The notes beneath the pieces were generated by a model. It was not told the origin of the DNA. It saw only the letters and a program-made list of their open reading frames with translations, and did not search any database. Positions 1,104 to 36,324 of a DNA stretch of 64,000 bases are shown here, in pieces (the stretch's first letter is position 1; each line of letters starts with the position of its first letter). Position numbers and translations under genes: made by a program. The stretch is from Lepidodermella squamata (taxonomy: Eukaryota > Animalia > Gastrotricha): contig JBLDXI010000048.1 of NCBI GenBank assembly GCA_047495785.1, positions 1,116,001 to 1,180,000 of the forward strand. Direction: 5' to 3'.

Positions 1104-2381
1104 ATGTTTGAGAAAACATATTGTCGTGATCATTTATGCGAGTTTTGCAAAGACTATTGTTTTCTCACGAGATACGACTTCTTGATTCAACTGATTGCTG
1201 AGTTGGGAACTTTGCTGGCAGAATATGTTGGAAAATATGTCGTAATAATATCGAATTCTTACGGCCAATGGTGGTTCCTGCAAATATTTGAAGGTCTTAG
1301 ACTCTGGCTTGACCTTAGGGGCGACAATGTTATAGTCATATTGCCTCACCAGGAGGAACGTGAAGCATTCCTGATCCCGCTGAATCAAACTCTAGCTAAC
1401 CTTGAAGAACGGGACGAGCTATCTTTCCTCATGTTGATTTTTCGAGTGCGTGTTCTGTCGAGTTTGCAAGATAAAACTCAATTAATATCGTTCCTCTGCC
1501 GAAATTGGTCGTATTTGCCGAAATGCGTCTTGTACTCAACAGTCATTCATCTGTTCGAAACCGATTGCGACATTGATACGTATCGAGCTCTGGCTGATGT
1601 TGGGATCTTCAATTATGGTTCCGGTCGGGTTTGCAGAGATGTAACTGAAATGGAATCATTTGCTGAATTCATTCGACGTCTCTGCTGGAAATGTTTAAAT
1701 TGTGTCAAGTTGGACTATCCTAAGGCGCCGCTGGGAGAGATGGACATTCAAAAAATTCGCGTTTTGACGGATTTAATCTCGCGAATTTCCGATGATGTCA
1801 AAGATCGGATCCAAAATTGGAATATATCCTTGGAATACCTTGTGGATTTCACAGACTTTGAAAACCATGTCGATGTGTTCCGCGACTACATCGATGCCTC
1901 AAATATTTATAGGAGCGAATGTTTTTTGATGGAATCATTCCTTTCCAAGAATTATTCTTTGGCGTTGGCATTACTTCAGGCTTCAAGCCCTCTCGACCGA
2001 GATGTCTCCGTTCACCTTCTACATGAATTTCAACGCGTCTTCTTTCGGAACGCGGATATTAGCAAAACTTGGGTTTTCACCGCTATTCATCAACTTAGCC
2101 GCGGATTTTCTTCGCCTCGGTGGAAAGTGCTCCCTCTTAGCCTAGTTTCATGCTGTAGACAGGTTATTCTAACCCACCTTCCGAGAGGCTGCAAGATCCG
2201 TTCCAACGCTATCAATCAACTGGGGCTGCCGCAGATGCTTTGCGATTTTCTCAACCTGCAGGATATTTGCGAACTTGCGAGCAGTGGAAATCGACCACCG
2301 CATAGAGCCTATATGACAGGTGATGATGGCGACGACGATTACTTCTACGACTACGGTGACGGCGACGAATATCATGGATAA
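1104..2381 (+). CDS. CxxC/SOCS-box family protein 1
   Basis: ATG at 1104 follows a ttttctag acceptor. Motifs: LCEFCKDYC, LPKCVL, LLQAS, SOCS box LSLVSCCRQVIL...LGLPQMLCDFL, and an acidic tail. Confidence 0.85.
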   Translation: MFEKTYCRDHLCEFCKDYCFLTRYDFLIQLIAELGTLLAEYVGKYVVIISNSYGQWWFLQIFEGLRLWLDLRGDNVIVILPHQEEREAFLIPLNQTLANLEERDELSFLMLIFRVRVLSSLQDKTQLISFLCRNWSYLPKCVLYSTVIHLFETDCDIDTYRALADVGIFNYGSGRVCRDVTEMESFAEFIRRLCWKCLNCVKLDYPKAPLGEMDIQKIRVLTDLISRISDDVKDRIQNWNISLEYLVDFTDFENHVDVFRDYIDASNIYRSECFLMESFLSKNYSLALALLQASSPLDRDVSVHLLHEFQRVFFRNADISKTWVFTAIHQLSRGFSSPRWKVLPLSLVSCCRQVILTHLPRGCKIRSNAINQLGLPQMLCDFLNLQDICELASSGNRPPHRAYMTGDDGDDDYFYDYGDGDEYHG

Positions 2382-5300
2382 TAATTCTTTGAACGTGATA
2401 AATATTAACGATAGACAGGGGTATATTTTTGTGATCAATTGATCGGTACATGTGCAAATCAAATATTTTCAGAGCATATTTCGTCTCTTTTGGCTCAATT
2501 GTTAACTATTTTGTGTTTTAGATCGAACTTGATGTATAAAATTTGTTCAACCCGGCTTGTAACGAACTTTTCCTGGCACGGTACTGATGATCGAGTTTGA
2601 AGATTAAAATTCTCAACTTGTTATTCACTTCAATCAGCAAAAAAGCCTAGCATTGTAGATACCTGTGTTTCTTCCTATCGAGTAGTCTGCTATTTTCATT
2701 ACACACTTGCAATATTTTCTATTTTTTGCCAATGTCTTTTCCAGCATAGTGCTTGCACTTGGCTCATATGTTTGAGAAAACGTATTGTCTTGATCGTTTA
2801 TGCGAGTTTTGCGAAGACTATTGTTTTCTCACGAGATACGACTTCTTAATTCAACTGATTGCTGAGTTGGAAACTTTGCTGGCAGAATATGTGGGGAAAT
2901 TCGACGTAATAATATCGAATTCTTACGGCCAATGGTGGTTCCCGCAAATTTTTGAAGACCTTGGTCTTTGGCTTGACGATAAGGGTGACAATATACTAGT
3001 CATACTTCCTCACCAGGAGGAACTTGAAACGTTCTCGATCGCGCTGAATCAAACTCTAGCTAACCTTGAAGAATTGGACGAGCTTTCCTTCCCCCTTTTG
3101 ATCTTTCGAGTGCGTGTTCTATCGAGTTTGCAAGATAAAGCTCAATTGACATCGTTTATTTGCCGAAATTGGTGGAATCTGCCGAAATGTGTCTTGTATT
3201 CTACAATCATTCATCTTTTCGATACTGATTTCGACATTGATACTTATCGAACTTTTGCTGATGTTGGGATCTTCAATTCTGGTCCCGGCCGGGTGTATGA
3301 CGATGGAACTGAAATGAAAGCATTTGTCGAATTCATTCGACGTTTCTGCCAAAAATGCTGCGTAGATCGGTTCGAGCGGTTCCGTCCCACGCGGACCCTT
3401 GAGGAGATTGACATTCAGAAATTTCCCGTTTTGACGGATTTGATCCCGCGAATTTCCGATGATGTGAAAGATTTGATCGATGATTGGAATATTTCCCTAG
3501 AATGCCTTGCGGATTACATGGACTTTGAAAATCACGGCGATTTGTTCTGTGACTTGATTGACGCCACAAAGAGTTTCAAAAATGAAAAGTTAATGTTGGG
3601 CTCACTCCTTCTTAAGAATTATCCTCTGATGTTGGTATTACTTAAGGCTTCAAGCCCTTTCGATCGAGACTTTTCTGTTCGTCTTCTTCGTGAATTTAAA
3701 CTCTACGGCTTTTGGACCAAGGATATTATTAGCAAAACTTGGGTTTTCACCGCTATTCATCAACTTAGCCGCGGATTTTCTTCGCCTCGGTGGAAAGTGC
3801 TCCCTCTTAGCCTAGTTTCATGCTGTAGACAGGTTATTCTAACCCACCTTCCGAGAGGCTGCAAGATCCGTTCCAACGCTATCAATCAACTGGGGCTGCC
3901 GCAGATGCTTTGCGATTTTCTCAACCTGCAGGATATTTGCGAACTTGCGAGCAGTGGAAATCGACCACCGCATAGAGCCTATATGACAGGTGATGATGGC
4001 GACGACGATTACTTCTACGACTACGGTGACGGCGACGAATATCATGGATAATAATTCTTTGAACGTGATAAATATTAACGATAGACAGGGGTATATTTTT
4101 GTGATCAATTGATCGGTACATGTGCAAATCAAATATTTTCAGAGCATATTTCGTCTCTTTTGGCTCAATTGTTAACTATTTTGTGTTTTAGATCGAACTT
4201 GATGTATAAAATTTGTTCAACCCGGCTTGTAACGAACTTTTCCTGGCACGGTACTGATGATCGAGTTTGAAGATTAAAATTCTCAACTTGTTATTCACTT
4301 CAATCAGCAAAAAAGCCTAGCATTGTAGATACCTGTGTTTCTTCCTATCGAGTAGTCTGCTATTTTCATTACACACTTGCAATATTTTCTATTTTTTGCC
4401 AATGTCTTTTCCAGCATAGTGCTTGCACTTGGCTCATATGTTTGAGAAAACGTATTGTCTTGATCGTTTATGCGAGTTTTGCGAAGACTATTGTTTTCTC
4501 ACGAGATACGACTTCTTAATTCAACTGATTGCTGAGTTGGAAACTTTGCTGGCAGAATATGTGGGGAAATTCGACGTAATAATATCGAATTCTTACGGCC
4601 AATGGTGGTTCCCGCAAATTTTTGAAGACCTTGGTCTTTGGCTTGACGATAAGGGTGACAATATACTAGTCATACTTCCTCACCAGGAGGAACTTGAAAC
4701 GTTCTCGATCGCGCTGAATCAAACTCTAGCTAACCTTGAAGAATTGGACGAGCTTTCCTTCCCCCTTTTGATCTTTCGAGTGCGTGTTCTATCGAGTTTG
4801 CAAGATAAAGCTCAATTGACATCGTTTATTTGCCGAAATTGGTGGAATCTGCCGAAATGTGTCTTGTATTCTACAATCATTCATCTTTTCGATACTGATT
4901 TCGACATTGATACTTATCGAACTTTTGCTGATGTTGGGATCTTCAATTCTGGTCCCGGCCGGGTGTATGACGATGGAACTGAAATGAAAGCATTTGTCGA
5001 ATTCATTCGACGTTTCTGCCAAAAATGCTGCGTAGATCGGTTCGAGCGGTTCCGTCCCACGCGGACCCTTGAGGAGATTGACATTCAGAAATTTCCCGTT
5101 TTGACGGATTTGATCCCGCGAATTTCCGATGATGTGAAAGATTTGATCGATGATTGGAATATTTCCCTAGAATGCCTTGCGGATTACATGGACTTTGAAA
5201 ATCACGGCGATTTGTTCTGTGACTTGATTGACGCCACAAAGAGTTTCAAAAATGAAAAGTTAATGTTGGGCTCACTCCTTCTTAAGAATTATCCTCTGAT

Positions 5301-5447
5301 GTTGGTATTACTTAAGGCTTCAAGCCCTTTCGATCGAGACTTTTCTGTTCGTCTTCTTCGTGAATTTAAACTCTACGGCTTTTGGACCAAGGATATTATT
5401 AGCAAAACTTGGGTTTTCACCGCTATTCATCAACTTAGCCGCGGATT
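2058..5447 (+). repeat. 1670-bp near-identical tandem duplication
   Basis: The sequence recurs at an offset of 1670 (ORFs at 2753/4423 and 2169/3839). The first mismatch I found is 3778 vs 5448. Confidence 0.92.
2768..4051 (+). CDS. CxxC/SOCS-box family protein 2 (chimera of gene 3 N-terminus and gene 1 C-terminus)
   Basis: ATG at 2768; LCEFCEDYC. The SOCS box and tail are identical to gene 1 and the body is identical to gene 3. Confidence 0.85.
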   Translation: MFEKTYCLDRLCEFCEDYCFLTRYDFLIQLIAELETLLAEYVGKFDVIISNSYGQWWFPQIFEDLGLWLDDKGDNILVILPHQEELETFSIALNQTLANLEELDELSFPLLIFRVRVLSSLQDKAQLTSFICRNWWNLPKCVLYSTIIHLFDTDFDIDTYRTFADVGIFNSGPGRVYDDGTEMKAFVEFIRRFCQKCCVDRFERFRPTRTLEEIDIQKFPVLTDLIPRISDDVKDLIDDWNISLECLADYMDFENHGDLFCDLIDATKSFKNEKLMLGSLLLKNYPLMLVLLKASSPFDRDFSVRLLREFKLYGFWTKDIISKTWVFTAIHQLSRGFSSPRWKVLPLSLVSCCRQVILTHLPRGCKIRSNAINQLGLPQMLCDFLNLQDICELASSGNRPPHRAYMTGDDGDDDYFYDYGDGDEYHG

Positions 5448-5724
5448 CTCTTCGCCTCGGTGGAAAGTGCTCCCTCTTAGCCTAGTTTCATGCTGTAGAC
5501 ATGTTATTCTAACCCACCTTCCGAGAGGCTGCAAGATCCGTTCCAACGCTATTAATCAACTGGGGCTGCCGCAGGTGCTTTGCGATTTTCTCAACCTGCA
5601 GGATATCTGCGAACTTGCGAGCAGAGGCATTCAGCCACCGCCCAGAAATGATCGTTATATGCCAAGTGACGATGGAGACGACGATCACTTCGACGACAAC
5701 GATGGCGACGATGATTATTGGTGA
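4438..5724 (+). CDS. CxxC/SOCS-box family protein 3
   Basis: Same motifs; SLVSCCRHVIL...LGLPQVLCDFL; acidic tail. Confidence 0.85.
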   Translation: MFEKTYCLDRLCEFCEDYCFLTRYDFLIQLIAELETLLAEYVGKFDVIISNSYGQWWFPQIFEDLGLWLDDKGDNILVILPHQEELETFSIALNQTLANLEELDELSFPLLIFRVRVLSSLQDKAQLTSFICRNWWNLPKCVLYSTIIHLFDTDFDIDTYRTFADVGIFNSGPGRVYDDGTEMKAFVEFIRRFCQKCCVDRFERFRPTRTLEEIDIQKFPVLTDLIPRISDDVKDLIDDWNISLECLADYMDFENHGDLFCDLIDATKSFKNEKLMLGSLLLKNYPLMLVLLKASSPFDRDFSVRLLREFKLYGFWTKDIISKTWVFTAIHQLSRGFSSPRWKVLPLSLVSCCRHVILTHLPRGCKIRSNAINQLGLPQVLCDFLNLQDICELASRGIQPPPRNDRYMPSDDGDDDHFDDNDGDDDYW

Positions 5725-5873
5725 TCGAATGTGTCAACAAAAATTCCTTTCAAGTGATGAAAACTAATGACGAGATGATATATACTTATTTTTGTGATCG
5801 AAGTGATCCATGAATGTGCAAATGAAATATTTTCTGATCATATTTCTCTTCTACTTCGTATTTTAGACATATT

Positions 5874-7118
5874 ATGAGCCAGTTTAGCTCGTGTACTATC
5901 GAACGATTTTGCGAATTTTGCAGGGACACCTGTTTTCTAGCCAAGAAAAAATTTCGCAAGGCTTTAAAACATCAACTTGCCTCATTTCTCGCGAGCGATT
6001 CCAATCTTCAAGTTGTAATTGTTGATGATAATCTTTTCGATCATGATTTCACCGGATTGCTAATCGAGACCACCATCGAATGTTGGTCGGCAAACTTGCG
6101 CGTTGTTATACTGGACCAGTCGCCTCGCCAAGAATCTTTCGCCTTCAACGATTGCAAAAAATCGGAGTTGTTGGCTAAATTTTCCGAGCATATTTCGGAG
6201 ATTGTGGAAATTCCACCGAATTTGGCTCCGTTCCTTGTTTTCGCCGCAAGTGTTTTTCAACAGGAGTACTGGCTAGAAGATCTGCGGAATCTCATCAGTA
6301 AATTCGGCCATATGATTCCTGAATGTTATCTAATGAAAATGAGCATTGAAGGTTTACCAAATCCTGAATCTTTTTTGACTTATCAAACAATTTTCGATGC
6401 CTTGCAATGTCGCATTGGCAACAGGATGAGTCACGAAGTATTCGAACGATTTCTGGCTAAATATCTTGAATCTTGCTGGAACGCTATTAGAGATGACTGG
6501 GACGAGGTGATCGAGATTCTGGTGGATCTAGTTCCAAAAATTGATAAAGAAGTGTTGAACAGCATGGGTTCAATTGCCTATAAAATGCAGCGTCTTATTT
6601 TCAATAAAATGAGGCCTTTAAGTGGCGGCCTTCTCGTAGATTACATCGATGCCTTGAAATGCTATGAAAATGCTTATCTACCTCTGGAAGCCATTGAATT
6701 TGGTCGAAACTTGGCTTTTCTACGTTTACTACAAGCCGGCTGCTCAGTCGCGTGGCTTATGAGCCTATGTGACTCGAGTTTCGATCCACCTCGTCGCCTC
6801 GTTGAATTGATTGAAGTAGTTTGCAGCGAGCTGTTGCACAAATCTGACTTAGCGTCAGTTCGCTTCATGTTCATTACGCGTAAATCAAAGCACGATCGTC
6901 CGTCCATTAATTTGTCATCGTGTTGCAGGCGTGTGATCCTTCGCAGTCTGCCGAAAGGCTGGCGGGCTCGGAAAAATGCGATCAATCAGCTTCAATTGCC
7001 GAAAATTCTTACTGATTTTCTCATGTTGCGCGACATCGCACGCGCCATCGAGTTGTATTCCGACTCTCTGTTGGTGCAGCCAAAACGGGTCCATTTCTGC
7101 CTCAATTTCTTCGATTAA
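5874..7118 (+). CDS. CxxC/SOCS-box family protein 4
   Basis: FCEFCRDTC, IPECYL, ILVDLVPKI, LLQAGC, NLSSCCRRVIL...LQLPKILTDFL. Confidence 0.85.
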   Translation: MSQFSSCTIERFCEFCRDTCFLAKKKFRKALKHQLASFLASDSNLQVVIVDDNLFDHDFTGLLIETTIECWSANLRVVILDQSPRQESFAFNDCKKSELLAKFSEHISEIVEIPPNLAPFLVFAASVFQQEYWLEDLRNLISKFGHMIPECYLMKMSIEGLPNPESFLTYQTIFDALQCRIGNRMSHEVFERFLAKYLESCWNAIRDDWDEVIEILVDLVPKIDKEVLNSMGSIAYKMQRLIFNKMRPLSGGLLVDYIDALKCYENAYLPLEAIEFGRNLAFLRLLQAGCSVAWLMSLCDSSFDPPRRLVELIEVVCSELLHKSDLASVRFMFITRKSKHDRPSINLSSCCRRVILRSLPKGWRARKNAINQLQLPKILTDFLMLRDIARAIELYSDSLLVQPKRVHFCLNFFD

Positions 7119-7803: not shown

Positions 7804-8102
7804 ATTCCTTGGATTCCTTGACCCTGGCATTACTTCAGACTAGCTCTTCATTCTACCTACTGGAACCGCTTTAATGCGGTAAATTAACTTGGATTCTTTT
7901 CGATTTTCTCAGCCTGAAAGATCTTGCGTAACTTCTGCTCTTTAAAATATGATCATAATTGTTGCTGTAAGAATTTCTTGATTGAAGATTGAATTGATCG
8001 ATGTGATTTCCGATAAAATTGATCCCCTAATCTTACTCCACCACGTTTTCGTTTCTAGCTTTACAAAAATTATTGAAGTATTTTTTGAGCTGGTTTTTGC
8101 TG

Positions 8103-9407
8103 ATGAATCTTTTGCATTGGCTTGGATTGGGCCATTCCGCGAAATTTTGCGAATTTTGCAATGACAAATGCTTCCTGGCCAAACGCGAATTTCGAAAAGC
8201 TCTGCTACGGGACCTTGTCGCAGTTCTCGCGACATCCGAGCGTAATCTACATGTTGTGATCGCCGAGGCGGGCAAGCAATTCGATTTCAGCAAATGGCTC
8301 GTCGATATTGAGATCAAAAGCTGGTCTACTGTGATGCGTGTCGTTATACTCGAATTATCGCCCAGCTACCCGAAATTGACTTACTATGAAACTGAACAGA
8401 AACAGTTGAATTTTTCCAGGAAACTCGCTGAATATTTGCTGGCAATTGCGAGAGGTAGCCACGAAATGACGCCGATTCTCGTTTTTCTAGTTTCCCTACT
8501 GCTGCAGAACAATGATTTCGCAAATTTGCGGTTAATTCTTCTAGAATTTGGATCGCATATTCCTAAATGTTTGCGATTGAAAATGAGCGTTCTAGCTTTG
8601 ACCAGTTGCGCAGATTCTGACCCGATTTTGACCAGCCAAGCCTTTCTGAATTTCGGACCTTATTTCGCCAATAAATCGATTTTTCTGAGGCATGAATCGA
8701 ATTGCAAAAAATGCGCTGAATTCGTTAAAATTGCGGAGAAATACATTGAATCCTGTTGTAAAATCATCGAATTTCCGAATAACGACAAAGAACTATTCAC
8801 TAGAATCGTCAAGATTCTTGTGGATCTGATTCCGAAAATTTATCCTGATCTAATTTGTGAGATGAAGCCAGCTTCCTCCCTGATTCCGATCGCCCTATTC
8901 CATCCAATGATGAAGGAGTTTGAAGATCTTTTCGTTGATTTGATCGACGCCTCAAGGTCCTATGAGAATCAAGATTTGCTGAATGTCACTATTCACTCCG
9001 AACACTATTTCGTATTTCTGAAATTGCTGCAAGCCGGCTGCCATCCGATTGCTCAAGATTCATTCGATTTAAATTTTCAGAACCTTATCCAGCGATGTAA
9101 TTCATTACCTGCCGCTTGGACTCAACTTCGCCCGATTTCGGAAACTACGACATTTCTTCTTCGTTCAGAGTCGAGCTTGAATTTTGAGACGCCGTTGAAT
9201 TTGCCCTCATTTTGCCGAAGAAAAATACTTGAAAGCCTGCCGAAAGGCTGGAGGGCTCGGAAAAATGCAATCGATCAGCTTCAACTGCCGAAGAATCTCA
9301 CTGATTATCTGATGTTGCAGGATATTGCTGAAATCACGAACCTTGAGCAAGCCGATCATAACAACAATGGTGCTCGTTCCCTCATGATTATTAATGATGA
9401 TTATTAA
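8103..9407 (+). CDS. CxxC/SOCS-box family protein 5
   Basis: First ATG at 8103; FCEFCNDKC, IPKCL, ILVDLIPKI, LLQAGC, NLPSFCRRKIL...LQLPKNLTDYL. Confidence 0.85.
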   Translation: MNLLHWLGLGHSAKFCEFCNDKCFLAKREFRKALLRDLVAVLATSERNLHVVIAEAGKQFDFSKWLVDIEIKSWSTVMRVVILELSPSYPKLTYYETEQKQLNFSRKLAEYLLAIARGSHEMTPILVFLVSLLLQNNDFANLRLILLEFGSHIPKCLRLKMSVLALTSCADSDPILTSQAFLNFGPYFANKSIFLRHESNCKKCAEFVKIAEKYIESCCKIIEFPNNDKELFTRIVKILVDLIPKIYPDLICEMKPASSLIPIALFHPMMKEFEDLFVDLIDASRSYENQDLLNVTIHSEHYFVFLKLLQAGCHPIAQDSFDLNFQNLIQRCNSLPAAWTQLRPISETTTFLLRSESSLNFETPLNLPSFCRRKILESLPKGWRARKNAIDQLQLPKNLTDYLMLQDIAEITNLEQADHNNNGARSLMIINDDY

Positions 9408-10023: not shown

Positions 10024-10326
10024 AATTTCGTAATTTTAATTTTTTTCAATATGACATTTCCCCTCCGACAGTTGTTCATTAGATAAAATAATTATTAATT
10101 CTAAATGATTTTTCATGATTCCCATGTCGCAAAACATGTGAAGGGAGCTGCAGCTACTTTTTTCCATAAGGAGCAATCATCGGCGATTACGTCGGGCTAG
10201 TTCCCGAGACCTTCTTTGGCAACATGGAAATTATGAAAAATCATTTCGAATTAATAATTATTTTTATTTAATGAACAACCGTCGGAGGGGAAATGCCGTA
10301 TTGAAAAAATATAAAACCACGAAATT
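10024..10326. mobile_element. Foldback/MITE-like long inverted repeat
   Basis: Imperfect arms of more than 100 bp (catttcccctccgacagttgttcatt... vs ...aatgaacaaccgtcggaggggaaatg) around a short spacer. Confidence 0.75.
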
Positions 10327-11242: not shown

Positions 11243-12544
11243 ATGGCCACGGGTGGCGATGGCTTTTTCACGAGAATATTGCGTAGGCTTGGCTATGGTC
11301 GAAAAAAGCGTCGTTTCTGCGCAATTTGCGGCGATACGTGTTTCTTAGCGACCACGAAATTCCAAGATGCATTGAGACGAGATTTGTGTAGTTTACAGTG
11401 CGCCGATGGCCGGGAAGACGGTCATCCTGGTCTATTATGCTGGGTAATTGACTTCTGGGCAGAATATGATTTCAGCAAATGCGCTTTTGAGCTTCACCCT
11501 GAAACAAGAGCTGCCAAAACTTCGGTTGTCTTCTTGGAATTATTTACTGACAGCTGCGTAGAGTTTACAGACGAAGAACAAAAGAAGAGACGATCGGTGT
11601 CTTTCACGTTTTATGCAGAAATTACTCTTGCGAATCTTGAAAAGAAGCAAAAACAAACGCTCATTGTATTTCTTGCATGGCTTCTGCTGGAAAGCAACGA
11701 TTTCGAAAGGCTGAAAGTTCATCTCGCAAAATATGGCTCTCGTATTCCAAAATGTTTGCTAATGGAAATGAGCTTGGACGCTACATTCAAAGACAGTGAT
11801 CTCCTCCCTGATTGGACGAACTTTCAAGCTTTCGTCGATTGTGGAGCTTTTTCCCTGAAGAAGTTATCGTTGTCGAAAAGACGAAAAAGCAAAAAATTTG
11901 TTGAAATGGTTGAATTTTTGGCGGAATTCATTGAAAATTGTTGCAAGTGGGCTGAAATGAATCCTCAACATAAGCTGGCATTTACGAAAATTTCCATAAT
12001 TTTGGGCAATTTGATTCCGAAGATTGACAAAAGCATCATTGCAGAGATCTCTCCATCGTTAATGCTACGAGCGTTTTCTATTGGCATTTTGGCACAGTGT
12101 GACAATCTATTCGCTGATCTCGTCGCTGCCACGAGGTGTTATGAGGACGGAGATTTACTTCTCGAAGCTCTTAAACGCCAGCGAAAATGGACTTTTCTCC
12201 GTTTGTTGCAAGGCGGCTGTCCTATTTCTTGTCAGCCACACTTCCAATACTCCGAATAGTTTCTGCCCTTTTTTCATTACAGTCCTTTCTTTGTCACGGC
12301 TTGTACGTTGCTTCTTCCAATATCAGAAATAACTTCTCAAAATTTGATGTATGTAACTGTTGAGCGTGGAATGCCGTTGAATTTGTTATCGTTTTGCAGA
12401 CGGGCGATACTTGATCGTCTTCCGAAAGGCTGGTGTGCTCGGAAGAACACGATCGATCAGCTGGGCTTGCCTTCAGTTCTGGCTGATTTTCTCATGTTGC
12501 AAGATATTGATGAATTCCTGGAAAACTGCAACGCAACTTTATAA
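11243..12544 (+). pseudogene. CxxC/SOCS-box family member 6 with one in-frame TAG
   Basis: tcc gaa TAG ttt ctg (stop at 12257-12259) corresponds to tcc gaa TAC ttt ctg in gene 8. The frame then continues intact through the SOCS box to 12544. Confidence 0.8.
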
Positions 12545-23000: not shown

Positions 23001-24254
23001 ATGATGGGATTCGAAGATTGGAAACATTATTGCCAATTTTGCGAAGAAACTTGTGTTCTCACAAAAAGCGGATTTTTAAGCGAATTGGTCCCCTACTTGG
23101 AATCTAAACTATCTGCGGAGGCGACAGTGGTATTGGCGAATCCAGCTTGCGGATGGAAATACCCGCCATCTATGGTTCTCCTCGACTTGCTCCTTACAAA
23201 AAGGGGCCAGGTAATTCACGTGGTCATTCTGCGGCGTTCTCTGTTGAAGGCCAGTTATCACTCGAGAATGACAAAGAATAAAAATGAAGCTGATGCATTG
23301 GTTTCTGGATTGAACGAGACTTTACTGACGCTTGATTCTTCTGGTCGACTTTCATTTCCTATCAAGGTGTTTCTAGCGCGACTTCTCATCCACGTCAAAA
23401 AATTCCATTGCTTGAAAGAATTCATTGATAGAAACATCACAGTTTTGCCCAAATGCCTGTTGCACGATACAATCTTTGAATTATTCGATGGCAATCACTT
23501 TTTCGAGCCGATAGAGTACTATCAAGTTTTTTCAAAGGCTGGAATGTTTAGTTTTGAGTCTGCTCTAACAAGGGGCAATTCGGTTGCTATCATTGCGTCA
23601 GCCGGGTTCCTCGGCCGTTTCCTAGAATTATGCAGTCGAAGTACTTTCATACTCTTCCTTACTCCCACATTTGTCTGTGAAGACGTGATCCGACGCAGGA
23701 GTGTGCAACAAATTCGCATTGTGACCGATTTGATTCCGAAGATTCCAACTGTTGTGAGGTCGCTGATTCCCGACTACGATGAAACTATTCACCGAACGCT
23801 GCTTCGCCGTCATGTCGATGAAGATCGCGACCTTGCGGCTGAGTTTATCGATGCTACGAAGGCTTACACTTACAAATGCACTGATATTTTACCCAAACTA
23901 ATTGCCTGCTTCAGGCAAAATGTCATATTGGTTTTACTGCAAGCAGGATTCAGTATTACGGCTAAGTCGATTTCTGTTATCGATATAGATCCACGTGATA
24001 CGTGGTTCTCGTTTGTGGCTGACCAGCTTTGCCGTGAATATTCACAGACGCACGTCTTGAGCCTTACATCGCGTTGCCGCCAGGTTATCCTCGCCCATCT
24101 TCCGAAAGGCCATTCGAACCGGAAAAAAGCCATCAAATCGCTTGGGATTCCTGATATCCCGAGCGATTTTCTTAACCTTCAAGATATTGCAGACTTGCAC
24201 CGAAATTCGCCACAAATTACAACACCCCATTGCATCGGGCTGGCATATTTTTGA
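23001..24254 (+). CDS. CxxC/SOCS-box family protein 11
   Basis: ATG at 23001; YCQFCEETC, LPKCLL, LLQAG, SLTSRCRQVIL...LGIPDIPSDFL. Confidence 0.85.
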   Translation: MMGFEDWKHYCQFCEETCVLTKSGFLSELVPYLESKLSAEATVVLANPACGWKYPPSMVLLDLLLTKRGQVIHVVILRRSLLKASYHSRMTKNKNEADALVSGLNETLLTLDSSGRLSFPIKVFLARLLIHVKKFHCLKEFIDRNITVLPKCLLHDTIFELFDGNHFFEPIEYYQVFSKAGMFSFESALTRGNSVAIIASAGFLGRFLELCSRSTFILFLTPTFVCEDVIRRRSVQQIRIVTDLIPKIPTVVRSLIPDYDETIHRTLLRRHVDEDRDLAAEFIDATKAYTYKCTDILPKLIACFRQNVILVLLQAGFSITAKSISVIDIDPRDTWFSFVADQLCREYSQTHVLSLTSRCRQVILAHLPKGHSNRKKAIKSLGIPDIPSDFLNLQDIADLHRNSPQITTPHCIGLAYF

Positions 24255-24965: not shown

Positions 24966-26150
24966 ATGGATGGGAATGAAGTTCCGGAATTCGACACGGA
25001 ATTTGCGAAGAAGATATGCAGCAACCTAGAAGACCTGCTAGTTCAATACACCCATGAGAAATATTGGGTTATTCTCGTCGAACACTTTGACGATTCGGAA
25101 TATGATAATGCCAGGGTTGTTCTTGACCTGGACATGGAAAATTTGGGCCTCCCTATTATTGTTAAAATAATGCGCCCTTCTACTCCTGAAGAGCCTTGCG
25201 ACTTCGAGAAGATGGAAGAAGAAGGGGAATTGATGACTGCTCAATTAAGTGAGACTTTATTGGCACTTGATGGTCAGCTTCCTGTCACCCTAATGGTGCT
25301 TTTAGCGCGAATCTTGTATCTACGCGATGCCGTGCACATGCGATCGCTGATTGAGAAAAACGGCGCGATTTTACCAAAAATTGTCTTCTGGGAAGCTTTC
25401 TATTTCGTGTTTGTGTCAGATGTCGAACCGATGGCTACTTATCAAGCTTTTTCTAAGTTGGGCTTTTTCAGCTTTGATTCTGTTGTAAAAAGTAACAATC
25501 ACGACGAAATCAGCGCTATGGCCAGGTATATGGAGCTGTTTTGCTGGGGATGCGCTCGATTCTCGGGTTCATTTCCTTTCTTTTTACTTGATTTGAAATT
25601 GGATGATCGGTCGCTTGAATATATTCGTGTTAAGAGAACTGAAGTTTTGTTAGATTTGATACCGCGAATTCCCCCCGCTGTTTTAACTTCAATGGAAGAG
25701 AGAAGATTCGACGTAACTTTGCTTCATGTGCTGATAGAATGGGACACGTTGAAACATGAGCAACTCATCGCAAATTTCATTGACATTTCAAAGGCTTACA
25801 TTTACGAGACAGTTCTTGTTAACACCGTGAGGCTGGGTGAAGGCGCCGTAACTTTGATGCTACTTCGAGCTGGATGTCCTCTTTCGCTTAACCTCTGCCT
25901 GTCTGCTTTAAAGGAAGGAAGCTATTCTCTATCTTGGACTTTCGCAGCGTTTCTGCAGTTATGCCCGGAGTTTTCGCTTTACCATGGATGGTACTGCACG
26001 CTGAGTCTGACGTCGCTCTGTCGGCAGACCATCCTTGCTCGCCTCCCAATGGGCATTTCTATGCGCCGGAACGCGATAAATCAACTAGGTTTACCGGAAA
26101 TGTTGACGGATTTTCTCAACCTGGGAGATATTGCTGAACTGCTGTTGTAG
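24966..26150 (+). CDS. SOCS-box family protein 12 (no Cys motif)
   Basis: PMATYQAF, LLDLIPRI, LLRAGC, SLTSLCRQTIL...LGLPEMLTDFL. The CxxC motif is absent and LPKI replaces LPKC. Confidence 0.85.
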   Translation: MDGNEVPEFDTEFAKKICSNLEDLLVQYTHEKYWVILVEHFDDSEYDNARVVLDLDMENLGLPIIVKIMRPSTPEEPCDFEKMEEEGELMTAQLSETLLALDGQLPVTLMVLLARILYLRDAVHMRSLIEKNGAILPKIVFWEAFYFVFVSDVEPMATYQAFSKLGFFSFDSVVKSNNHDEISAMARYMELFCWGCARFSGSFPFFLLDLKLDDRSLEYIRVKRTEVLLDLIPRIPPAVLTSMEERRFDVTLLHVLIEWDTLKHEQLIANFIDISKAYIYETVLVNTVRLGEGAVTLMLLRAGCPLSLNLCLSALKEGSYSLSWTFAAFLQLCPEFSLYHGWYCTLSLTSLCRQTILARLPMGISMRRNAINQLGLPEMLTDFLNLGDIAELLL

Positions 26151-26326: not shown

Positions 26327-27592
26327 ATTAAGTATGAAATTTGGAAGCATTATTGCCAGTATTGCGACAAAGCATGCATTCTGGGAAGAGGAAGATTTTC
26401 AAACGAATTGGTGGCCAGCCTAAAAGCCATGCTACCTGAGGAAACTGTATCCGTGGAGCTCAGCAATTTAATTAGCTGCGATAGATTGTACAAGATGGTG
26501 CTCGCCCTCGAGTTGACAGCGAAAGGACGTGTTACCCACGTGGTCATTTTTCAGCGACTTTCTTCCCCGAAGATTCCTTTCGTTTCCTCGATGACTCGCT
26601 TCGACACAGACGAGAGTGAAGAAGAAGTAGATGATATTGTTCATTTGTTGGACAAGAAATTGTCAGCTTTAGACTCTGAAGACAAACTGTCACTACCTCT
26701 GATGGTTTTCCGAGCAAGGCTTCTCATCCATCGCAAACCTTTCAAAGAATTGCGGTCATTTATCGACAAAAACCGCCAAATTTTTCCGAAATGCTTTTTG
26801 GAGGAATTGGCTGTCGATTTATTCCGAAGTGATTCTGACTTAGAGCCAATGGCAAGCTATCAACTCTTTTTAAGGTCTGGAACTTTCGATTTCGAAGCTG
26901 CCATAGCCAGAAAATCCCGAGCCGCCACGATTGCATCAGCTCTGTCCGTCGGACGTTTCATCGAGTCGTGCGCTCATTTGAACACGTTGAAAACTTGCGA
27001 CGAGATGCGACGGAGAAACCGCACTGAAACCATCCAGATTTTGACGGATCTGATTGCTCGAATTCCAAACGGCGTGATGAAACTTGCTGGTGAAACTATG
27101 TATGCTGTGCTATCTCGTCGACTGTTCAAAAAAGATGTTGACCTCGCTGTCGAATTCTGCGACGTCTTGAAGTCTTACACTTACGATCATATACTGTCAG
27201 AAGCAATCTCCGAGGATAGAAAAGCCTTCGCCTTAATGCTGCTGCGAGCTGGTAGTTCTCTCACAGCTAGTTCCAGCTCTCAGATCCTGGCCGATGTTTC
27301 AGCCAAGCAGTCGGCTGAGGACTCCTGCTGGCGTATTTTTGCTGTTGAACAGCTTTTCCGGGGAAGTTCCATCTCAACGGGGACATTTTCATCTGTGAGT
27401 CTTGTGCCTCTATGTCGTCGAAGTATTCTCGCTCAGCTTCCAAGGGGTTTCTCGGTCCGACAGCTGGCAATCAAAATGTTGGGCTTGCCCGATGTACTGA
27501 CAAGTTATCTCAACCTTGAAGATATCGAAGAGCTGCAGCGAAGCCTGGAAACTGCTGGGATATCTGATGACGAAATCGAATATGACTGTTAG
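26327..27592 (+). CDS. CxxC/SOCS-box family protein 13 (start unresolved)
   Basis: The frame is open upstream of the track start and reads IKYEIWKHYCQYCDKAC. The first in-frame ATG is at 26429. SOCS box SLVPLCRRSIL...LGLPDVLTSYL. Confidence 0.75.
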   Translation: MKYEIWKHYCQYCDKACILGRGRFSNELVASLKAMLPEETVSVELSNLISCDRLYKMVLALELTAKGRVTHVVIFQRLSSPKIPFVSSMTRFDTDESEEEVDDIVHLLDKKLSALDSEDKLSLPLMVFRARLLIHRKPFKELRSFIDKNRQIFPKCFLEELAVDLFRSDSDLEPMASYQLFLRSGTFDFEAAIARKSRAATIASALSVGRFIESCAHLNTLKTCDEMRRRNRTETIQILTDLIARIPNGVMKLAGETMYAVLSRRLFKKDVDLAVEFCDVLKSYTYDHILSEAISEDRKAFALMLLRAGSSLTASSSSQILADVSAKQSAEDSCWRIFAVEQLFRGSSISTGTFSSVSLVPLCRRSILAQLPRGFSVRQLAIKMLGLPDVLTSYLNLEDIEELQRSLETAGISDDEIEYDC

Positions 27593-27729: not shown

Positions 27730-29100
27730 ATGTTAAATACCATGTTGTTTACTTTTGATGTTGAAAAATGGCATGTCGATTGTGATTTTTGCGATGCTCT
27801 CTGCGCCAAAATTTCCGATTTGTATCTGCATGAAATGCCTTATGAACTGTCTCGAGTTGTTAAGCTGCTGTATCCACCATTCAGCCGCAATCTTCACGTT
27901 ATTTATGGCGAGATTTCTAAGGAAAATTCAGCCGACAGTCTCGTTCTAACAACGTTGTCGCCCCTGATTTCAGAAAAATGCGTTCGCATTGTCATTCCAT
28001 GCCGTGATTTTGGAGTCTTTAAAACTCAGCTCAAATCAAAAGAGTTGGCTAAAATTGGCGAAATGGTCGAGAAAGCCCTTTCTTCTAAGCTAATTCACCG
28101 CATTTTGAAGCTGAAATGTTTCGACTCACTTACTTTCGTTTGCTTTCATTTGTGCTTGAAATTGAAGGATTTTGATAGTTTACGCTCGATCGTTCCTTTG
28201 ATCGAAAATACTGCGCCAAAATGTCTGCTGTTCAAGGTTTTCCAAACAGTATTTGACTACGAATCAGGGGATAAGTGGCCGCTCTTAACTTACCGAGCTT
28301 TCAGCCAACAAATTCGAACAGAGTTCAACAAAATTATTCCGAGGTCTTTCTATGAAAACGATTTTCTGGGACGTCGCAAATGGCGTACGAGTTTTGGCGA
28401 GGGTATTTCTCGCTTGATTTCAAGCCTTGGGTTGGAGTTCCATTCTATCAAAAGCGATTGCTTCGTTGATATTCAACGTTTCTACGTTCTTATCGATGTT
28501 CTCAATCAGGTGAAGTCCTACGTGAACCTGGCGCCTTATGTCGATAAAATTGAGCCTCAGTTGAAGTTCAGCTCGGCAATTTCTCTCCAATTGGCTCGGC
28601 GTTTTTTCGATGCGGCTCAGGCCTACCGCTACACTAAGGATTTGTTGACAATAAGTTATAACCCACGGGTTTTGTTGCTTTGCTTGCAATCAGGGTGTGA
28701 CATGAAGTTTTTGGATGGCAGGAAATTCTATACGCTCAGCTCTTACCCTGGGCTTTTCCCGTTCTTAGTTGAAATACTGCCGGATAGACGTGATTTGATG
28801 GTTCTTTATCCTGATGAAACTGAATCCCTTCTTCCCTTGAAATTGACCTCACTTTGCCGCAGAAATATTCTACGTTGCCTGCCGCCTGGTTGTCTTGCGA
28901 GGGTTCAAGCGATTCAATCCTTGTATCTGCCGGAGGATGTTGAACAATTTTTGATGCTTAGAGACATGTTTCGCGGAGTCCTGCGGACGGACGGACAGCG
29001 GGTGAGATATTTCAATCGAGCGCGTGCAACGAAGCGCCATAGCGATTTTGCAGTTTCACGACTTCCTTGCAACCAGCTAAACACCTCCCTTGGCTACTGA
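27730..29100 (+). CDS. CxxC/SOCS-box family protein 14 (divergent)
   Basis: DCDFCDALC, APKCLL, CLQSGC, KLTSLCRRNIL...LYLPEDVEQFL. Confidence 0.85.
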   Translation: MLNTMLFTFDVEKWHVDCDFCDALCAKISDLYLHEMPYELSRVVKLLYPPFSRNLHVIYGEISKENSADSLVLTTLSPLISEKCVRIVIPCRDFGVFKTQLKSKELAKIGEMVEKALSSKLIHRILKLKCFDSLTFVCFHLCLKLKDFDSLRSIVPLIENTAPKCLLFKVFQTVFDYESGDKWPLLTYRAFSQQIRTEFNKIIPRSFYENDFLGRRKWRTSFGEGISRLISSLGLEFHSIKSDCFVDIQRFYVLIDVLNQVKSYVNLAPYVDKIEPQLKFSSAISLQLARRFFDAAQAYRYTKDLLTISYNPRVLLLCLQSGCDMKFLDGRKFYTLSSYPGLFPFLVEILPDRRDLMVLYPDETESLLPLKLTSLCRRNILRCLPPGCLARVQAIQSLYLPEDVEQFLMLRDMFRGVLRTDGQRVRYFNRARATKRHSDFAVSRLPCNQLNTSLGY

Positions 29101-29889: not shown

Positions 29890-30295
29890 CGAAGCTCATT
29901 GATTAAGGCGGAAAATGCATTGCGACAGGGAGAACTATTTCAGCTCGGAGATGCAAAATTAACTGGCTTGCTCTCCATTTTATCAAGGCCGGGCTGAGAA
30001 TCAAGAAAAGATCTTCTGTGAAACTCGCCGTGCAGAAGGTTGTTGTCCTGCTAGGTGACGCTGAAGAAAACTTCGTTTTCTGGAAATATGTCCGTGAAAA
30101 CGATTCACCGATCAGCCTGATGTCGATCTGCAGGAAAGTTGTACTCAAACGGCTTCCGTTGGGTTTTTATGCCCGAAACCGCACGATTGAAGCTTTCGGC
30201 ATCCTGCGATCATTTCGGAAATCTGCGATCATTTGAAGCCGAAAGAGGTCGACGTCAACGATTCCGCAACGATACCCAAACTCAGCAAATTCTAG
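29890..30295 (+). pseudogene. 3' relic of a SOCS-box family gene
   Basis: LID*...LHFIKAG...PISLMSICRKVVLKRLPLGFYARNRTI. A short duplication of ctgcgatcattt shifts the frame in the cullin box. Confidence 0.7.
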
Positions 30296-31863: not shown

Positions 31864-33036
31864 ATGCAAAGACGGGGCATCGCAAAACGGAGGTGCGAAT
31901 TCTGTCGCGGTAATTGCGTCATTTTACAGCCAGATTTTGAAACAAGCTTGATCTCCGACTTGAGTCGCATTTTTGCTGTAAGGGATCCTAATTTAACCAT
32001 TGCCTCCGCTGCGAAATTTTCCACGGAAGCGAGTTGCCTGGTTTCATTACCAATTGGAAGCGGTGGGTTTCTAGCTATTCCGGTCATCGATCGATCCCAG
32101 GAATTGATTGCTTCGGAGGAGAATGCTAACAAACTCATCGGTGCTTTCATGCAGGAATTTTCATCTGGACTTTCCAACTCTGCAACTGCTCTATTTGCTT
32201 GGCTCGTCGTTGAATATGTCGATGTTTTGGCAAAGGTAATTCCTTTTCGAGACATTCTCAACCTGGCTGATTTGTTGATACCAACGTGTTTGCTGGTTGA
32301 AATGGCCTGCAAAGCAGTTGGAAATCTCAAAAATAAAGCTCCATACTATTCATATGATACGTTTTCAATCTGTTGGCTGTTCAATTTCAATCGAGTTGGG
32401 AGTCAGCTAGTCGCGATTTCCAGTTTCCTCGATAGATTTTTACTGGCTTGCACTGCCACATTTCACCTCGTAAATGAGCGAGGTCTACACAAGCCAGAGT
32501 TTTCGCAACGCGTGCGCATTCTGATAGACCTCTTTCCGAAAATTCCCGGAATCATGCGCGGAAAAATGAATGAGTTGCCCACAGCAGTTCGTCAAGTATT
32601 GTTGTATCCTATGTTTGATCATCAAGACCACGGTTTGGTAATAGATTTCATCGACGTTGCGCATGATTTTTGCGACGCACTTCTTCTAACTGAACTTCTG
32701 AGTCGTGGTAAAACTAGCATAGTTGAGTATTTGATTCAGGCTGGATCGGGTTTCCAGCCTCCTGAACAATTCCATGTTCGTTACAGGCATGACAAGGACC
32801 ATTTACGCTCAGCTGAGCTGCTATCGCGAGCTCATCTGGTTTTCTCAAGCAAGGAGACGTTGCTGTCTCGTTGTCGGCAAGAAATCCTGGCTTGTTTGCC
32901 AAGGGGCTATCGAGCTCGAACCAGTGCGATCAAACGGCTTGGCTTGCCGATTGTGTTGAGCGACTATCTCTCACTCCAAGATTTCTTGCAGATCATCAAA
33001 CAGCCCATTGAGTCTAAATGTTTGCATCGCTATTAG
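31864..33036 (+). CDS. CxxC/SOCS-box family protein 16
   Basis: RCEFCRGNC, IPTCLL, ILIDLFPKI, LIQAG, TLLSRCRQEIL...LGLPIVLSDYL. Confidence 0.85.
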   Translation: MQRRGIAKRRCEFCRGNCVILQPDFETSLISDLSRIFAVRDPNLTIASAAKFSTEASCLVSLPIGSGGFLAIPVIDRSQELIASEENANKLIGAFMQEFSSGLSNSATALFAWLVVEYVDVLAKVIPFRDILNLADLLIPTCLLVEMACKAVGNLKNKAPYYSYDTFSICWLFNFNRVGSQLVAISSFLDRFLLACTATFHLVNERGLHKPEFSQRVRILIDLFPKIPGIMRGKMNELPTAVRQVLLYPMFDHQDHGLVIDFIDVAHDFCDALLLTELLSRGKTSIVEYLIQAGSGFQPPEQFHVRYRHDKDHLRSAELLSRAHLVFSSKETLLSRCRQEILACLPRGYRARTSAIKRLGLPIVLSDYLSLQDFLQIIKQPIESKCLHRY

Positions 33037-33196
33037 AATGAGCCATTCGCCTGTTCAAGCTTGCATTCATTTTTTTTTCGAAAACAGAACGTATGCTATG
33101 TGAAATGATGACCTACTGTAATAGTAAAAAAGCGAACTTGAACCGTGTTTTCCTATTAAAGTACCACGAAATTTCATTTGTAGGTAGCTTCAAAGC

Positions 33197-34267
33197 ATGA
33201 CTCCGCCTGAGCATATCGAGTATAATTCCAGCAGTACCGAAATGCGTGAATTTAAGAAAGAACTGGTTAAAACTCTTCAATCGATAATCGACCTAGATTT
33301 GGTTCCTGTAACTGTCATGGCTGCAATTCAAGTCGAAATTTGCGAACATCGAAGAGTGGGCCAACTGTACCGGTTTTGGATGCCGGAAGTCTTGCAGCCC
33401 CATGTGTACCTCATTGCGAATTCCAGCCACCAAATTGACTCCAGTTTTTGCTTTGGCCTTCGGAAATCTGTGAAAATGTGTGCGCTGACGTCGTTCCAAC
33501 ATTTGGCACCGAAGAAGATAGTTCGAATTCTGCGATCCAGCTTGGTCAACAAAGCCTTAACGTCAACTGACTTCAATCCTACCGTTCTTCTCGCGATTTC
33601 AATGTGCATGGAATCATCTGATTGGGCGATGATTCGTAAAATTTTATCAAATTTCGGAAAAATGATCCCGACGTGTATTTTATCACCCCTATTTCACTGT
33701 TCCTTGAAAGCTAAAAATGATGACTATCCAATGAAAACGTTCGAAGTGTTTATGAATGCGTGCACCGATTTCGCTGTTTTAACTTCAGAGATCCATACCC
33801 ACCCTATTGTTCTGCTGTGTTTAACACTTCAGTCATGCGTTATCGATGCTGTTTGTAATAAAAACCGTTTAGGATGTGTTGAGATAGACGGTAAAATCGC
33901 GGTTCTCCTTCGAATCCTTGCCAGCCTCGACTTTTCGAATGCTAAAGTTTCTAAACTGTTTGAACAATTTGAATTCACACTTTTTCTACGCTGGTTAGCC
34001 GAATACTCTGATAAATCGTTGATTGAAGTGTTGGGTGCCATAAATCGCGCAAATTACGATGAAATCGCTTCAGAGGCTATGCTTTTGTCTGCTCAGCCAA
34101 ATAGGCCATCTGGAGACAGTTCGAAATTCGCCAAAGTTGCGCAGGTTCTGAGGCGAATTGAAGCTGAACAGAACCCTCTGGACTGCTCGGAAATGGCTGC
34201 TAAATCAAGCAGTTTCGAACCTATTGATTCGATAGAGACCCCTTGTTTGGATGGTCGAGGCGTTTAA
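33197..34267 (+). CDS. Divergent family-related protein lacking the SOCS box
   Basis: 356-aa ORF. FGKMIPTCIL and YPMKTFEVF match the family core (FGHMIPECYL, PMATYQAF). There is no BC box and no CxxC. Confidence 0.65.
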   Translation: MTPPEHIEYNSSSTEMREFKKELVKTLQSIIDLDLVPVTVMAAIQVEICEHRRVGQLYRFWMPEVLQPHVYLIANSSHQIDSSFCFGLRKSVKMCALTSFQHLAPKKIVRILRSSLVNKALTSTDFNPTVLLAISMCMESSDWAMIRKILSNFGKMIPTCILSPLFHCSLKAKNDDYPMKTFEVFMNACTDFAVLTSEIHTHPIVLLCLTLQSCVIDAVCNKNRLGCVEIDGKIAVLLRILASLDFSNAKVSKLFEQFEFTLFLRWLAEYSDKSLIEVLGAINRANYDEIASEAMLLSAQPNRPSGDSSKFAKVAQVLRRIEAEQNPLDCSEMAAKSSSFEPIDSIETPCLDGRGV

Positions 34268-34822: not shown

Positions 34823-35716
34823 ATGGAGAGTATGATGCCTGTACCCGAGAGCGTGAATTACCATTTCACTAGAAAATGCAACTATCAGTGCGGTTTTTGC
34901 TTCCATACCGCAAAGACAAGCTATGTAGTGCCATTGGACGAAGCTAAACGGGGAATGTCTCTCTTGAAGGAAGCTGGCATGCGGAAAATCAACTTCAGCG
35001 GAGGGGAGCCTTTTCTCTACAAGGAATTCCTCGGCGAAATGGTCAAATTTTGCAAGGATAACCTCAAACTGGAGTCAGTTAGCATTATCAGCAACGGCAG
35101 CCTAGTTAACGAGGACTGGTTTCGCGAATATGGCCGGTATCTTGATATAATGGGTGTTTCATGCGACAGTTTTGTCGAGGAAACCAATGTTAAAATTGGA
35201 CGCAGCTCGAAGGGCGGCAAGAAGGCCCACTTGCAGACTTTCCGCTATGTTCGCGATTTGTGCCAGAGCTACGATGTCCTTTTCAAAGTCAACACAGTTG
35301 TCAACACGTTCAACAAACACGAAGATATGAGTGAAGGAATCTGCGAGTTGAAACCTGTTCGTTGGAAGGTTTTCCAGTGTCTGCTGATCCCTGGCGAAAA
35401 TTGTGGCGATGATGCCTTGAGGAAAGCTGAAACCTTCGTTATAAGTGATGCCGATTTCGACGCATTCATCGAACGACATCGATCAGTTGATGCAATAAGG
35501 GATATCCTAAAGCCCGAGTCGAATCAAGCTATGCGGCAATCATATTTCATCGTAGATGAATACATGCGCTTTCTTGATGGTGGTACTAAGCGACCTAGTC
35601 GTTCGATTTTAGACGTTGGCGTAGCAAACGCGTTGCCTGGTGCAAAGTTTGACGAAGCAGAATTTTTGAAGCGCGGCGGCAAGTACGAATGGAGCAAGAT
35701 CTCATATGAATGGTGA
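34823..35716 (+). CDS. RSAD2: Viperin (radical SAM antiviral ddhNTP synthase)
   Basis: [20 protein letters not shown] (CxxxCxxC), [51 protein letters not shown] and a terminal Trp. Confidence 0.97.
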
Positions 35717-35955
35717 CAAAGCTTCTCCTTGTGATCAAATATCTATTTTAGCCGGTTAGTGAAGCAAACTCAATCGGGAACTTCACCATAACTTCACCAT
35801 ATTAACTCCTCCAGATTTTTCTGATAAAGCCTTGCTTTCTCTAAAGTACCTATTAAAAACTATATAAAAAATCGAGCAAAAAATACTGCTAAAAAATCCA
35901 TCCTAATAACCAATTATTCGACAGTTCATATTGAAACTTCGCAGTAAAACAGCCG

Positions 35956-36324
35956 ATGAAAATGAAGATTGGGTCCCTCATTTTGGCTAGCATCGCCATT
36001 GTCACTGCTTGTAACTCAGAATTAGAAGATGTAGGACGGTTTCACACAGAGGGCGATGATGAGTGCCTAGATCACTGTTACGATCTACAGCTCGAGCCGC
36101 GTTTTTTCGACGGCGAGTTCCTCAACTGCAAGTGTGAAGCAAAGGAGCCCGTGTTTGAGAATATTGCTGATGAAGAGGAGTGTGCAATTTGGTGCTCTTA
36201 TTCGGCGTATGAATACCTACTAAAAGACTTGCTGCCAGATTTCGATCCGGTCACAAAAATTTGCCGATGCCACACCCCCGAGCTAGTGGAGGATAACGCT
36301 GAAACGATGCACGGTCATGAGTAG
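35956..36324 (+). CDS. Small secreted acidic Cys-rich protein with two CxxxC...CxC units
   Basis: Signal-peptide-like N-terminus; ECLDHC...CKC and ECAIWC...CRC; TATATAAA near 35861. Confidence 0.75.
   Translation: MKMKIGSLILASIAIVTACNSELEDVGRFHTEGDDECLDHCYDLQLEPRFFDGEFLNCKCEAKEPVFENIADEEECAIWCSYSAYEYLLKDLLPDFDPVTKICRCHTPELVEDNAETMHGHE

Follow-up and report, generated by a model that had tools for sequence, protein, structure and literature searches.

In a 64,000-nucleotide stretch of the genome of the gastrotrich Lepidodermella squamata (GenBank assembly GCA_047495785.1, contig JBLDXI010000048.1, forward-strand positions 1,116,001 to 1,180,000; hereafter, the window), we found a tandem array of paralogous genes whose products combine a conserved C-terminal SOCS box with a very divergent body. 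Most probably, the genes form a lineage-specific family that arose by tandem duplication and encodes receptors through which Elongin B/C-cullin-RING ubiquitin ligases recognise their substrates. Searches within the window using tblastn, hmmsearch, and nhmmer revealed 16 body-bearing paralogs, all on the forward strand and spread over approximately 33 kb (positions 1104-34267), together with two relics (Table 1). Fourteen of the 16 were intact and retained the box, with open reading frames (ORFs) of 387-456 amino acids; one copy carried an in-frame stop codon and one had lost the box. The first-pass annotation of this DNA had counted about 17 tandem SOCS-box adaptors, in good agreement with 16 paralogs and two relics on one strand.

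Several members of the array required individual treatment. The stop-bearing copy, c6, was scanned as two pieces flanking its stop; its box is intact, and the stop probably marks a pseudogene, or else stems from the assembly or from allelic variation. The copy that had lost the box, c16, is a genuine, very distant homolog, as it matched a hidden Markov model built from the other copies with an E value of 1.6e-10. The start of c13 is uncertain because the conserved N-terminal Cys motif described below lies in frame 5' of its first ATG. Since no family member was found in positions 1-1103, the left edge of the array may fall inside the window. A 20-bp tandem repeat of 2.8 copies was observed at 976-1033, directly 5' of the first paralog. 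Two spacers within the array contained self-complementary palindromes, approximately 75% matched, of about 300 bp (10024-10326) and about 200 bp (17455-17654), which may be hairpin-forming or miniature inverted-repeat transposable element-like sequences. No Pfam domain was detected in the ORFs of the array spacers.

The SOCS box

The Pfam SOCS_box profile (PF07525; gathering score, 23.5 bits) matched all 14 intact box-bearing copies, and ten of these matches exceeded the gathering score (25.8-37.9 bits). When 13 copies were aligned, 15 columns of a 50-residue segment covering the box were invariant. The BC box in the first helix of a SOCS box is defined by a Leu that is conserved, a Cys at the fourth position after it, and a hydrophobic residue a further four positions along. 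The same pattern was observed in the array, where L4, C8, and I12/L13 of the 50-residue segment were invariant in 13 of 13 aligned copies. Furthermore, an AlphaFold model of copy 10 showed C-terminal helices at residues 374-385, 390-399, and 404-410, with a predicted local distance difference test score (pLDDT) of 91-94 over residues 381-410, indicating that the three-helix fold is present. The products were thus identified as SOCS-box proteins, as first proposed, and are therefore probable Elongin B/C-cullin substrate adaptors. A comparison of the SOCS-box profile with PDB sequences returned leucine-rich-repeat designs, which were rejected as spurious.

The body and its predicted fold

The body, approximately 340 amino acids in length, contained no Pfam or NCBIfam domain in the paralogs. 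No homolog of the body was found among 5.8 billion clustered proteins when copy 10 was used as the query. A body-only profile compared with 1.84 billion representative sequences gave one marginal match, an ankyrin/U-box protein, which covered one repeat. SOCS-box patterns were also scanned over metagenome contigs, and no family member was detected there. Judged by these sequence searches, the architecture appears to be an undescribed family with a new body.

The AlphaFold model of copy 10 was built on an alignment of the 16 paralogs only and was confident (pLDDT, 81.6; predicted template modelling score, 0.82). Its N-terminal part is small and of the alpha/beta type, with three strands and a C-x2-C-x3-C motif. 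The middle part is an alpha-solenoid of approximately 230 residues, comprising about seven two-helix units at a spacing of about 33 residues, and is followed by a disordered linker and then by the three short helices of the SOCS box. Fold searches with the whole model against PDB and predicted viral structures gave only generic solenoids and helical repeats, none of them significant, in line with the earlier remark that the architecture was not recognised as any described family. The C-x2-C-x3-C motif (residues about 23-30 of copy 10) was present in 14 of 16 copies when the upstream frame of c13 was included, and two single Cys residues outside the SOCS box (about 159 and 220 in copy 10) were present in 15 of 16. 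One copy matched zf-FCS weakly (E 0.14). These conserved Cys residues of the body may form a zinc or other metal site.

The last 120 residues were also modelled separately (pLDDT, 76.8). In PDB, the ten best fold matches to this model included nine complexes of Elongin B/C with ASB9, ASB8, or ASB7, members of the ankyrin-SOCS-box (ASB) proteins; these matches were weak (E 0.38-3.5, probability of at most 0.75, and template modelling score of at most 0.40). A sequence profile of the same 120 residues gave sub-threshold matches to designed ankyrin repeat proteins (DARPins)/ankyrin and to the SOCS box of ASB9. Three weak and independent signals thus converge and point to the ASB type as the closest known architecture. 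On the other side, no Pfam Ank-family match was obtained in any of the 16 copies even at E <= 10, and no internal repeat was detected in the body by profile self-comparison. Because neither Pfam nor self-comparison revealed an ankyrin domain, the family was not filed as ASB.

Divergence, selection, and turnover

Between subgroups, the bodies were 13-41% identical, whereas the 42-residue SOCS box was 45-81% identical. An identity of at least 80% was reached in 34 of the 341 body columns and in 21 of the 42 box columns; the initial description of a conserved box joined to very divergent bodies was confirmed. At the DNA level, the SOCS-box segment was the sole stretch that could still be aligned between c4/c5 and c6-c10.

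The ratio of nonsynonymous to synonymous divergence (dN/dS) was calculated by pairwise Nei-Gojobori counting between paralogs, with sliding windows of 30 codons. Body dN/dS was 0.24-0.45 in every pair, and the sliding windows exceeding 1 were scattered and inconsistent between pairs. Hence, the positively selected body that had been anticipated was not seen at pairwise resolution; site-level selection on the body may still be present within these paralog-only data. In distant pairs, box dN/dS was 0.13-0.22 while synonymous divergence was high or saturated, and the box is under real constraint in these pairs. In close pairs, the synonymous divergence (dS) of the box and the 3' end was near zero, whereas that of the body was 0.36-0.41. 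Near-zero box dS between close paralogs points to gene conversion and not to constraint alone. The expectation of a constrained box therefore stood for distant pairs, but the likeness of the box in close pairs is partly a matter of gene conversion. Taken together, the intact frames and the dN/dS values of body and box indicate that the genes are under selection and are not decaying.

Traces of recent turnover were also observed. Copies c1-c3 (1093-5846) arose by a recent tandem triplication of an approximately 1.66-kb unit. The bodies of c2 and c3 are identical and their tails differ, whereas the tails of c1 and c2 are synonymously identical and their bodies stand at dS 0.36; this mosaic indicates gene conversion or unequal crossing-over. 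Similarity was highest between neighbouring copies. With its recent duplicates, one stop-bearing copy, one box-loss copy, and two relics, the array is undergoing birth-and-death evolution.

Viperin and the Cys-rich ORF

The gene that follows the array encodes the antiviral enzyme viperin (RSAD2); it lies on the same strand, is separated from the last paralog by 555 bp, and consists of a single intronless ORF. It scored 467.8 bits with TIGR04278 (cut-off, 450) and matched PDB 7n7h with an E value of 1e-122 over residues 5-294. The radical S-adenosylmethionine C-x3-C-x2-C triad was found near the N-terminus, and the product aligned end to end with solved viperins. The identification of viperin about 550 bp beyond the array was accordingly verified. 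The product was 61-66% identical to the best 120 animal viperins listed; among the matches listed, it was about equally far from those of bivalves, fish, birds, and cnidarians, and no phylum exceeded 66%. An exact look-up of the protein returned no record. The ORF begins four residues before the conserved core, without the N-terminal extension (amphipathic in vertebrates), and relatives are 310-406 amino acids long. An acceptor-like site 5 nt ahead of the ATG leaves room for an upstream viperin exon.

An orphan ORF starts 239 bp after viperin, which corresponds to the secreted-type Cys-rich gene noted earlier at about 240 bp. Its product has a hydrophobic, signal-like N-terminus followed by eight Cys residues arranged as two C-x3-C...C-x-C modules, and its isoelectric point is 4.2. 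No match to this product was found in Pfam, NCBIfam, or PDB.

Transcription signals

Polypyrimidine-AG acceptor-like sites were located 5-45 nt 5' of the start codon in 12 of 18 genes (array and viperin). The background was approximately 25% at random positions or other ATGs, giving a binomial p of 2e-4 for paralogs that are not independent of one another. This excess suggests 5'-untranslated-region introns or spliced-leader trans-splicing. Several intergenic spacers measured just 137-386 bp, so that polycistronic transcription is conceivable. Consensus sites for the interferon-stimulated response element (ISRE), the gamma-activated site (GAS), and NF-kB occurred at background density 5' of the array genes, viperin, and the Cys-rich ORF, and no motif was common to the upstream regions of the array and viperin. 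A recurrent upstream 7-mer, TTTCTCA, was considered as a shared promoter motif and rejected, since it is SOCS-box coding sequence of the preceding gene.

Genomic neighbourhood

The window is host chromosomal DNA of the animal, containing an intron-bearing cytochrome P450 gene, viperin, and a satellite. The G+C content was 0.39-0.45 and even from base 1 through the array and the flanking host genes to approximately 52 kb. Downstream of the Cys-rich ORF, we found the CYP3-like P450 gene, a SERBP1/HABP4-like gene, a trypsin-like gene on the reverse strand, and a C2H2 zinc finger gene. Relatives of the P450 were searched with exon 1 alone; the best was a metagenome protein with 39% identity, and that of Capitella showed 33%. 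Such low identity points to a poorly sampled animal lineage. A scan of the metagenome contig bearing the best P450 relative detected no member of the SOCS-box family.

The satellite begins approximately 16 kb from the gene array; its copies are 96% alike, with a G+C content of about 0.52 and a strong GC skew. Between its two blocks lies a non-satellite segment of about 1.8 kb (61045-62871), which contains a 136-amino-acid ORF without a Pfam match. Tandem repeats of 36-39 bp at 46132-46212, 47763-47857, and 47966-48038 encode Pro/Ala/Gln- or Asn/Gly-rich low-complexity peptide; they sit in a G+C-richer stretch whose ORFs had no Pfam match. No Rfam family was detected within the window, and no virus-like or provirus-like content was found in it.

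Table 1 Features of the window. Positions are those of the window; SOCS_box scores are for Pfam PF07525; aa, amino acids.
Feature	Position	Strand	Length	SOCS_box (bits)	Remarks
c1	1104-2381	+	425 aa	27.6	Intact; SOCS box followed by acidic tail
c2	2768-4051	+	427 aa	27.3	Intact; mosaic of c3-like body and c1-like tail
c3	4438-5724	+	428 aa	25.8	Intact
c4	5874-7118	+	414 aa	30.2	Intact
Relic in c4-c5 spacer	7858-7937	+			SOCS-box coding DNA; nhmmer with SOCS-box DNA profile, E 1.6e-6
c5	8103-9407	+	434 aa	27.1	Intact
c6	11243-12544	+		29.0 (piece after stop)	Full length in one frame; single in-frame stop
c7	13508-14791	+	427 aa	27.5	Intact
c8	15536-16822	+	428 aa	25.9	Intact
c9	17829-19115	+	428 aa	29.4	Intact
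c10	21340-22629	+	429 aa	37.9	Intact; copy used for AlphaFold model
c11	23001-24254	+	417 aa	20.6 (sub-gathering)	Intact; E 5e-4
c12	24966-26150	+	394 aa	30.3	Intact; lacks N-terminal Cys motif
c13	26327-27592	+		20.3	First ATG at 26429
c14	27730-29100	+	456 aa	19.9	Intact; very divergent
Paralog fragment	29907-30246	+			C-terminal part with decayed SOCS box; hmmsearch E 1.6e-11, nhmmer E 2.3e-10
c15	31864-33036	+	390 aa	18.9	Intact
c16	33197-34267	+	356 aa	No match	Most divergent copy; body recognisable
Viperin (RSAD2)	34823-35716	+	297 aa		Single intronless ORF
Cys-rich ORF	35956-36324	+	122 aa		Orphan
CYP3-like P450	38648-40250				Two exons around one 51-bp GT..AG intron (39617-39667)
Satellite, first block	52377-61044				179-bp unit; about 48 copies
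Satellite, second block	62872-64000				179-bp unit; at least 6 copies

Discussion

The reading of the array as a family of ligase substrate receptors builds on its domain composition, its tandem structure, its divergence pattern, and its orphan status, all of which were observed directly. If it is correct, the SOCS box would dock Elongin C and B plus a cullin, either Cul2 or Cul5, and target selection would fall to the variable solenoid, possibly assisted by the part bearing the Cys motif; the selected target would then be ubiquitinated. Separate paralogs would be expected to take separate targets. The family turns over as copies are duplicated in tandem, lost, and locally converted, and gene conversion holds the 3' SOCS-box ends alike between neighbours. 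As for the targets, non-self or conflict-type proteins, that is, pathogen proteins or products of selfish elements, are a tentative first choice; endogenous, regulatory targets are also possible, and a family without settled function is rather unlikely.

Some observations weigh against the assignment. Four of the 14 intact copies scored under the Pfam gathering score (18.9-20.6 bits, E <= 0.002). The LPxP (LP-hydrophobic-P) core of the Cul5 box is described as a prerequisite for specific binding to Cul5, and no Cul5 interaction was detected for SOCS1, in which the Cul5 box is incompletely conserved (PMC4812663). This core is absent from the family: all 13 aligned copies have L-x-[L/I]-P at this position, with the first Pro replaced by G, Q, E, or Y. 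Recruitment of Cul5 is not assured for this reason; the distal L..[F/Y]-L of the cullin box is retained. In addition, the structural and sequence links to ASB proteins were all sub-significant (E 0.09-3.5), and the array comprises predicted genes whose docking to Elongin and a cullin is itself a prediction.

The family resembles ASB proteins, which are receptors of the Cul5 type, in that a helical-repeat, target-binding body stands directly before a C-terminal SOCS box. The two-helix spacing of about 33 residues equals the length of an ankyrin repeat (PMC3779351). The only faintly ankyrin- or DARPin-like repeat is the one before the box. However, the array differs from ASB proteins in having neither a Pfam ankyrin match nor an internal sequence repeat, in its extra N-terminal alpha/beta part with the Cys motif, and in the unconserved LPxP of the Cul5 box, and no ASB protein was retrieved in the large protein searches. 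ZIF-1 of Caenorhabditis elegans is a SOCS-box receptor of a CUL-2 ligase with no other recognisable domains. The array proteins are similar to it in size and likewise consist of an unannotated body and a SOCS box, whereas ZIF-1 is a single gene and the array is tandem. Neither the family proteins nor their profile retrieved ZIF-1, and thus there was no evidence of homology.

A broader parallel is provided by the F-box and MATH-BTB families of nematodes and plants, which are likewise large, lineage-specific, tandem, and subject to birth-and-death evolution (PMC8120010, PMC3030570). In both cases a conserved ligase-docking motif is joined to a variable target-binding part; the docking motif is a SOCS box here and an F-box or BTB domain there, which implies a different cullin arm. 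Positive selection and a link to defence have been reported for nematode F-box families (PMC8120010, PMC4334554). Strong positive selection is a hallmark of the F-box and MATH-BTB families, but it was not detected in the array by pairwise counting. In MGF505 of African swine fever virus (ASFV), tandem paralogs likewise have a body of helical repeats, and a motif resembling a SOCS/VHL box recruits Elongin B and Cul5 (PMC13342108). MGF505 is viral and counteracts host immunity, whereas the array lies in a host chromosome and showed no structural or sequence match to it. By analogy, MGF505 can be regarded as a functional parallel only.

The first-pass annotation had interpreted the locus as an antiviral island, in which variable intracellular receptors ubiquitinate viral or other pathogen proteins and are co-regulated with viperin and the Cys-rich gene. 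We consider this unlikely. The array does adjoin viperin on the same strand, with the signal-bearing Cys-rich ORF next to it; the presumed target-binding body is extremely divergent beside a conserved ligase-docking box; the genes follow birth-and-death dynamics with a lineage-specific orphan body; and the short spacers together with the acceptor-like sites leave room for shared transcription. The nematode F-box repertoires offer a precedent (PMC8120010, PMC4334554). However, a single adjacency was available, as no related genome turned up in the protein and contig searches. Any defence-related neighbour would have been flagged, so that the chance expectation of such an adjacency is presumably not small. 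The body showed no consistent signal of positive selection, ISRE, GAS, and NF-kB-type sites were not enriched, no motif was shared with the viperin upstream region, and the remaining neighbours (the P450, SERBP1/HABP4-like, trypsin-like, and zinc finger genes) are not immune-specific. Typical antimicrobial peptides are cationic, unlike the acidic Cys-rich ORF. The antiviral island is consequently not supported beyond the adjacency itself, which is real and counts as weak circumstantial evidence. The more specific proposal, in which an undescribed class of SOCS-box receptors with a new target-binding fold serves as the diversified intracellular pathogen-recognition repertoire of a sparsely sampled animal lineage and is linked to viperin in both position and transcription, perhaps by a shared or polycistronic transcript, appears quite unlikely.

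Alternatively, the receptors could act on the animal's own proteins, in developmental or germline turnover of the kind known for ZIF-1, or in selfish or incompatibility systems, with viperin as a chance neighbour; germline expression would be predicted. Fast-evolving tandem cullin-adaptor genes have been documented in such roles (PMC3144186, PMC11573670): zeel-1, a member of the ZYG-11 family, lies inside a toxin-antidote element (PMC3144186), and a newborn, species-specific F-box gene causes phosphoglucomutase to be degraded in hybrids (PMC11573670). The average purifying selection, with dN/dS of about 0.4, is equally compatible with endogenous and with pathogen targets, and the lack of an immune-type regulatory motif agrees with this explanation. 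On the other hand, the searches revealed homology neither to ZIF-1 nor to members of the ZYG-11 family or F-box proteins, and the window contains no linked toxin-like gene; on balance, this explanation is doubtful. A viral or horizontal origin, for example if a large DNA virus had contributed an endogenised multigene family akin to ASFV MGF505, is very improbable. Intronless, tandem, orphan genes with a motif that recruits a host ligase would suit such an origin, and SOCS-box-like motifs do occur in multigene families of viruses (PMC13342108), but the G+C content was uniform across the array and the flanking host genes, no hallmark viral gene was present among the spacer ORFs, the comparison with predicted viral structures gave generic helical repeats with none at E <= 0.001, and the acceptor-like sites 5' of the starts resemble those of neighbouring host genes. 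It is similarly hard to believe that segmental duplication left behind a functionless array that is now decaying. The stop-bearing copy, the box-loss copy, and the two relics could be taken in that sense; however, 14 long ORFs are intact although synonymous divergence saturates between subgroups, dN/dS is well below 1 in body and box, and an AlphaFold model built from the paralog alignment alone was confident.

The array of SOCS-box genes is thus a solid new gene family, and an antiviral role for it is a weak hypothesis. Animal SOCS-box receptors are known as small, stable families, namely SOCS, ASB, SPSB, and WSB, and large adaptor repertoires with fast turnover have been described mainly for the F-box and BTB cullin arms. 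A tandem, rapidly diverging SOCS-box family would extend this repertoire pattern to the Elongin B/C arm, and with its unrecognised body a new scaffold for binding targets would be added. Should the link with viperin be functional, the locus would also count among the rare cases of clustered innate-defence genes in animals.

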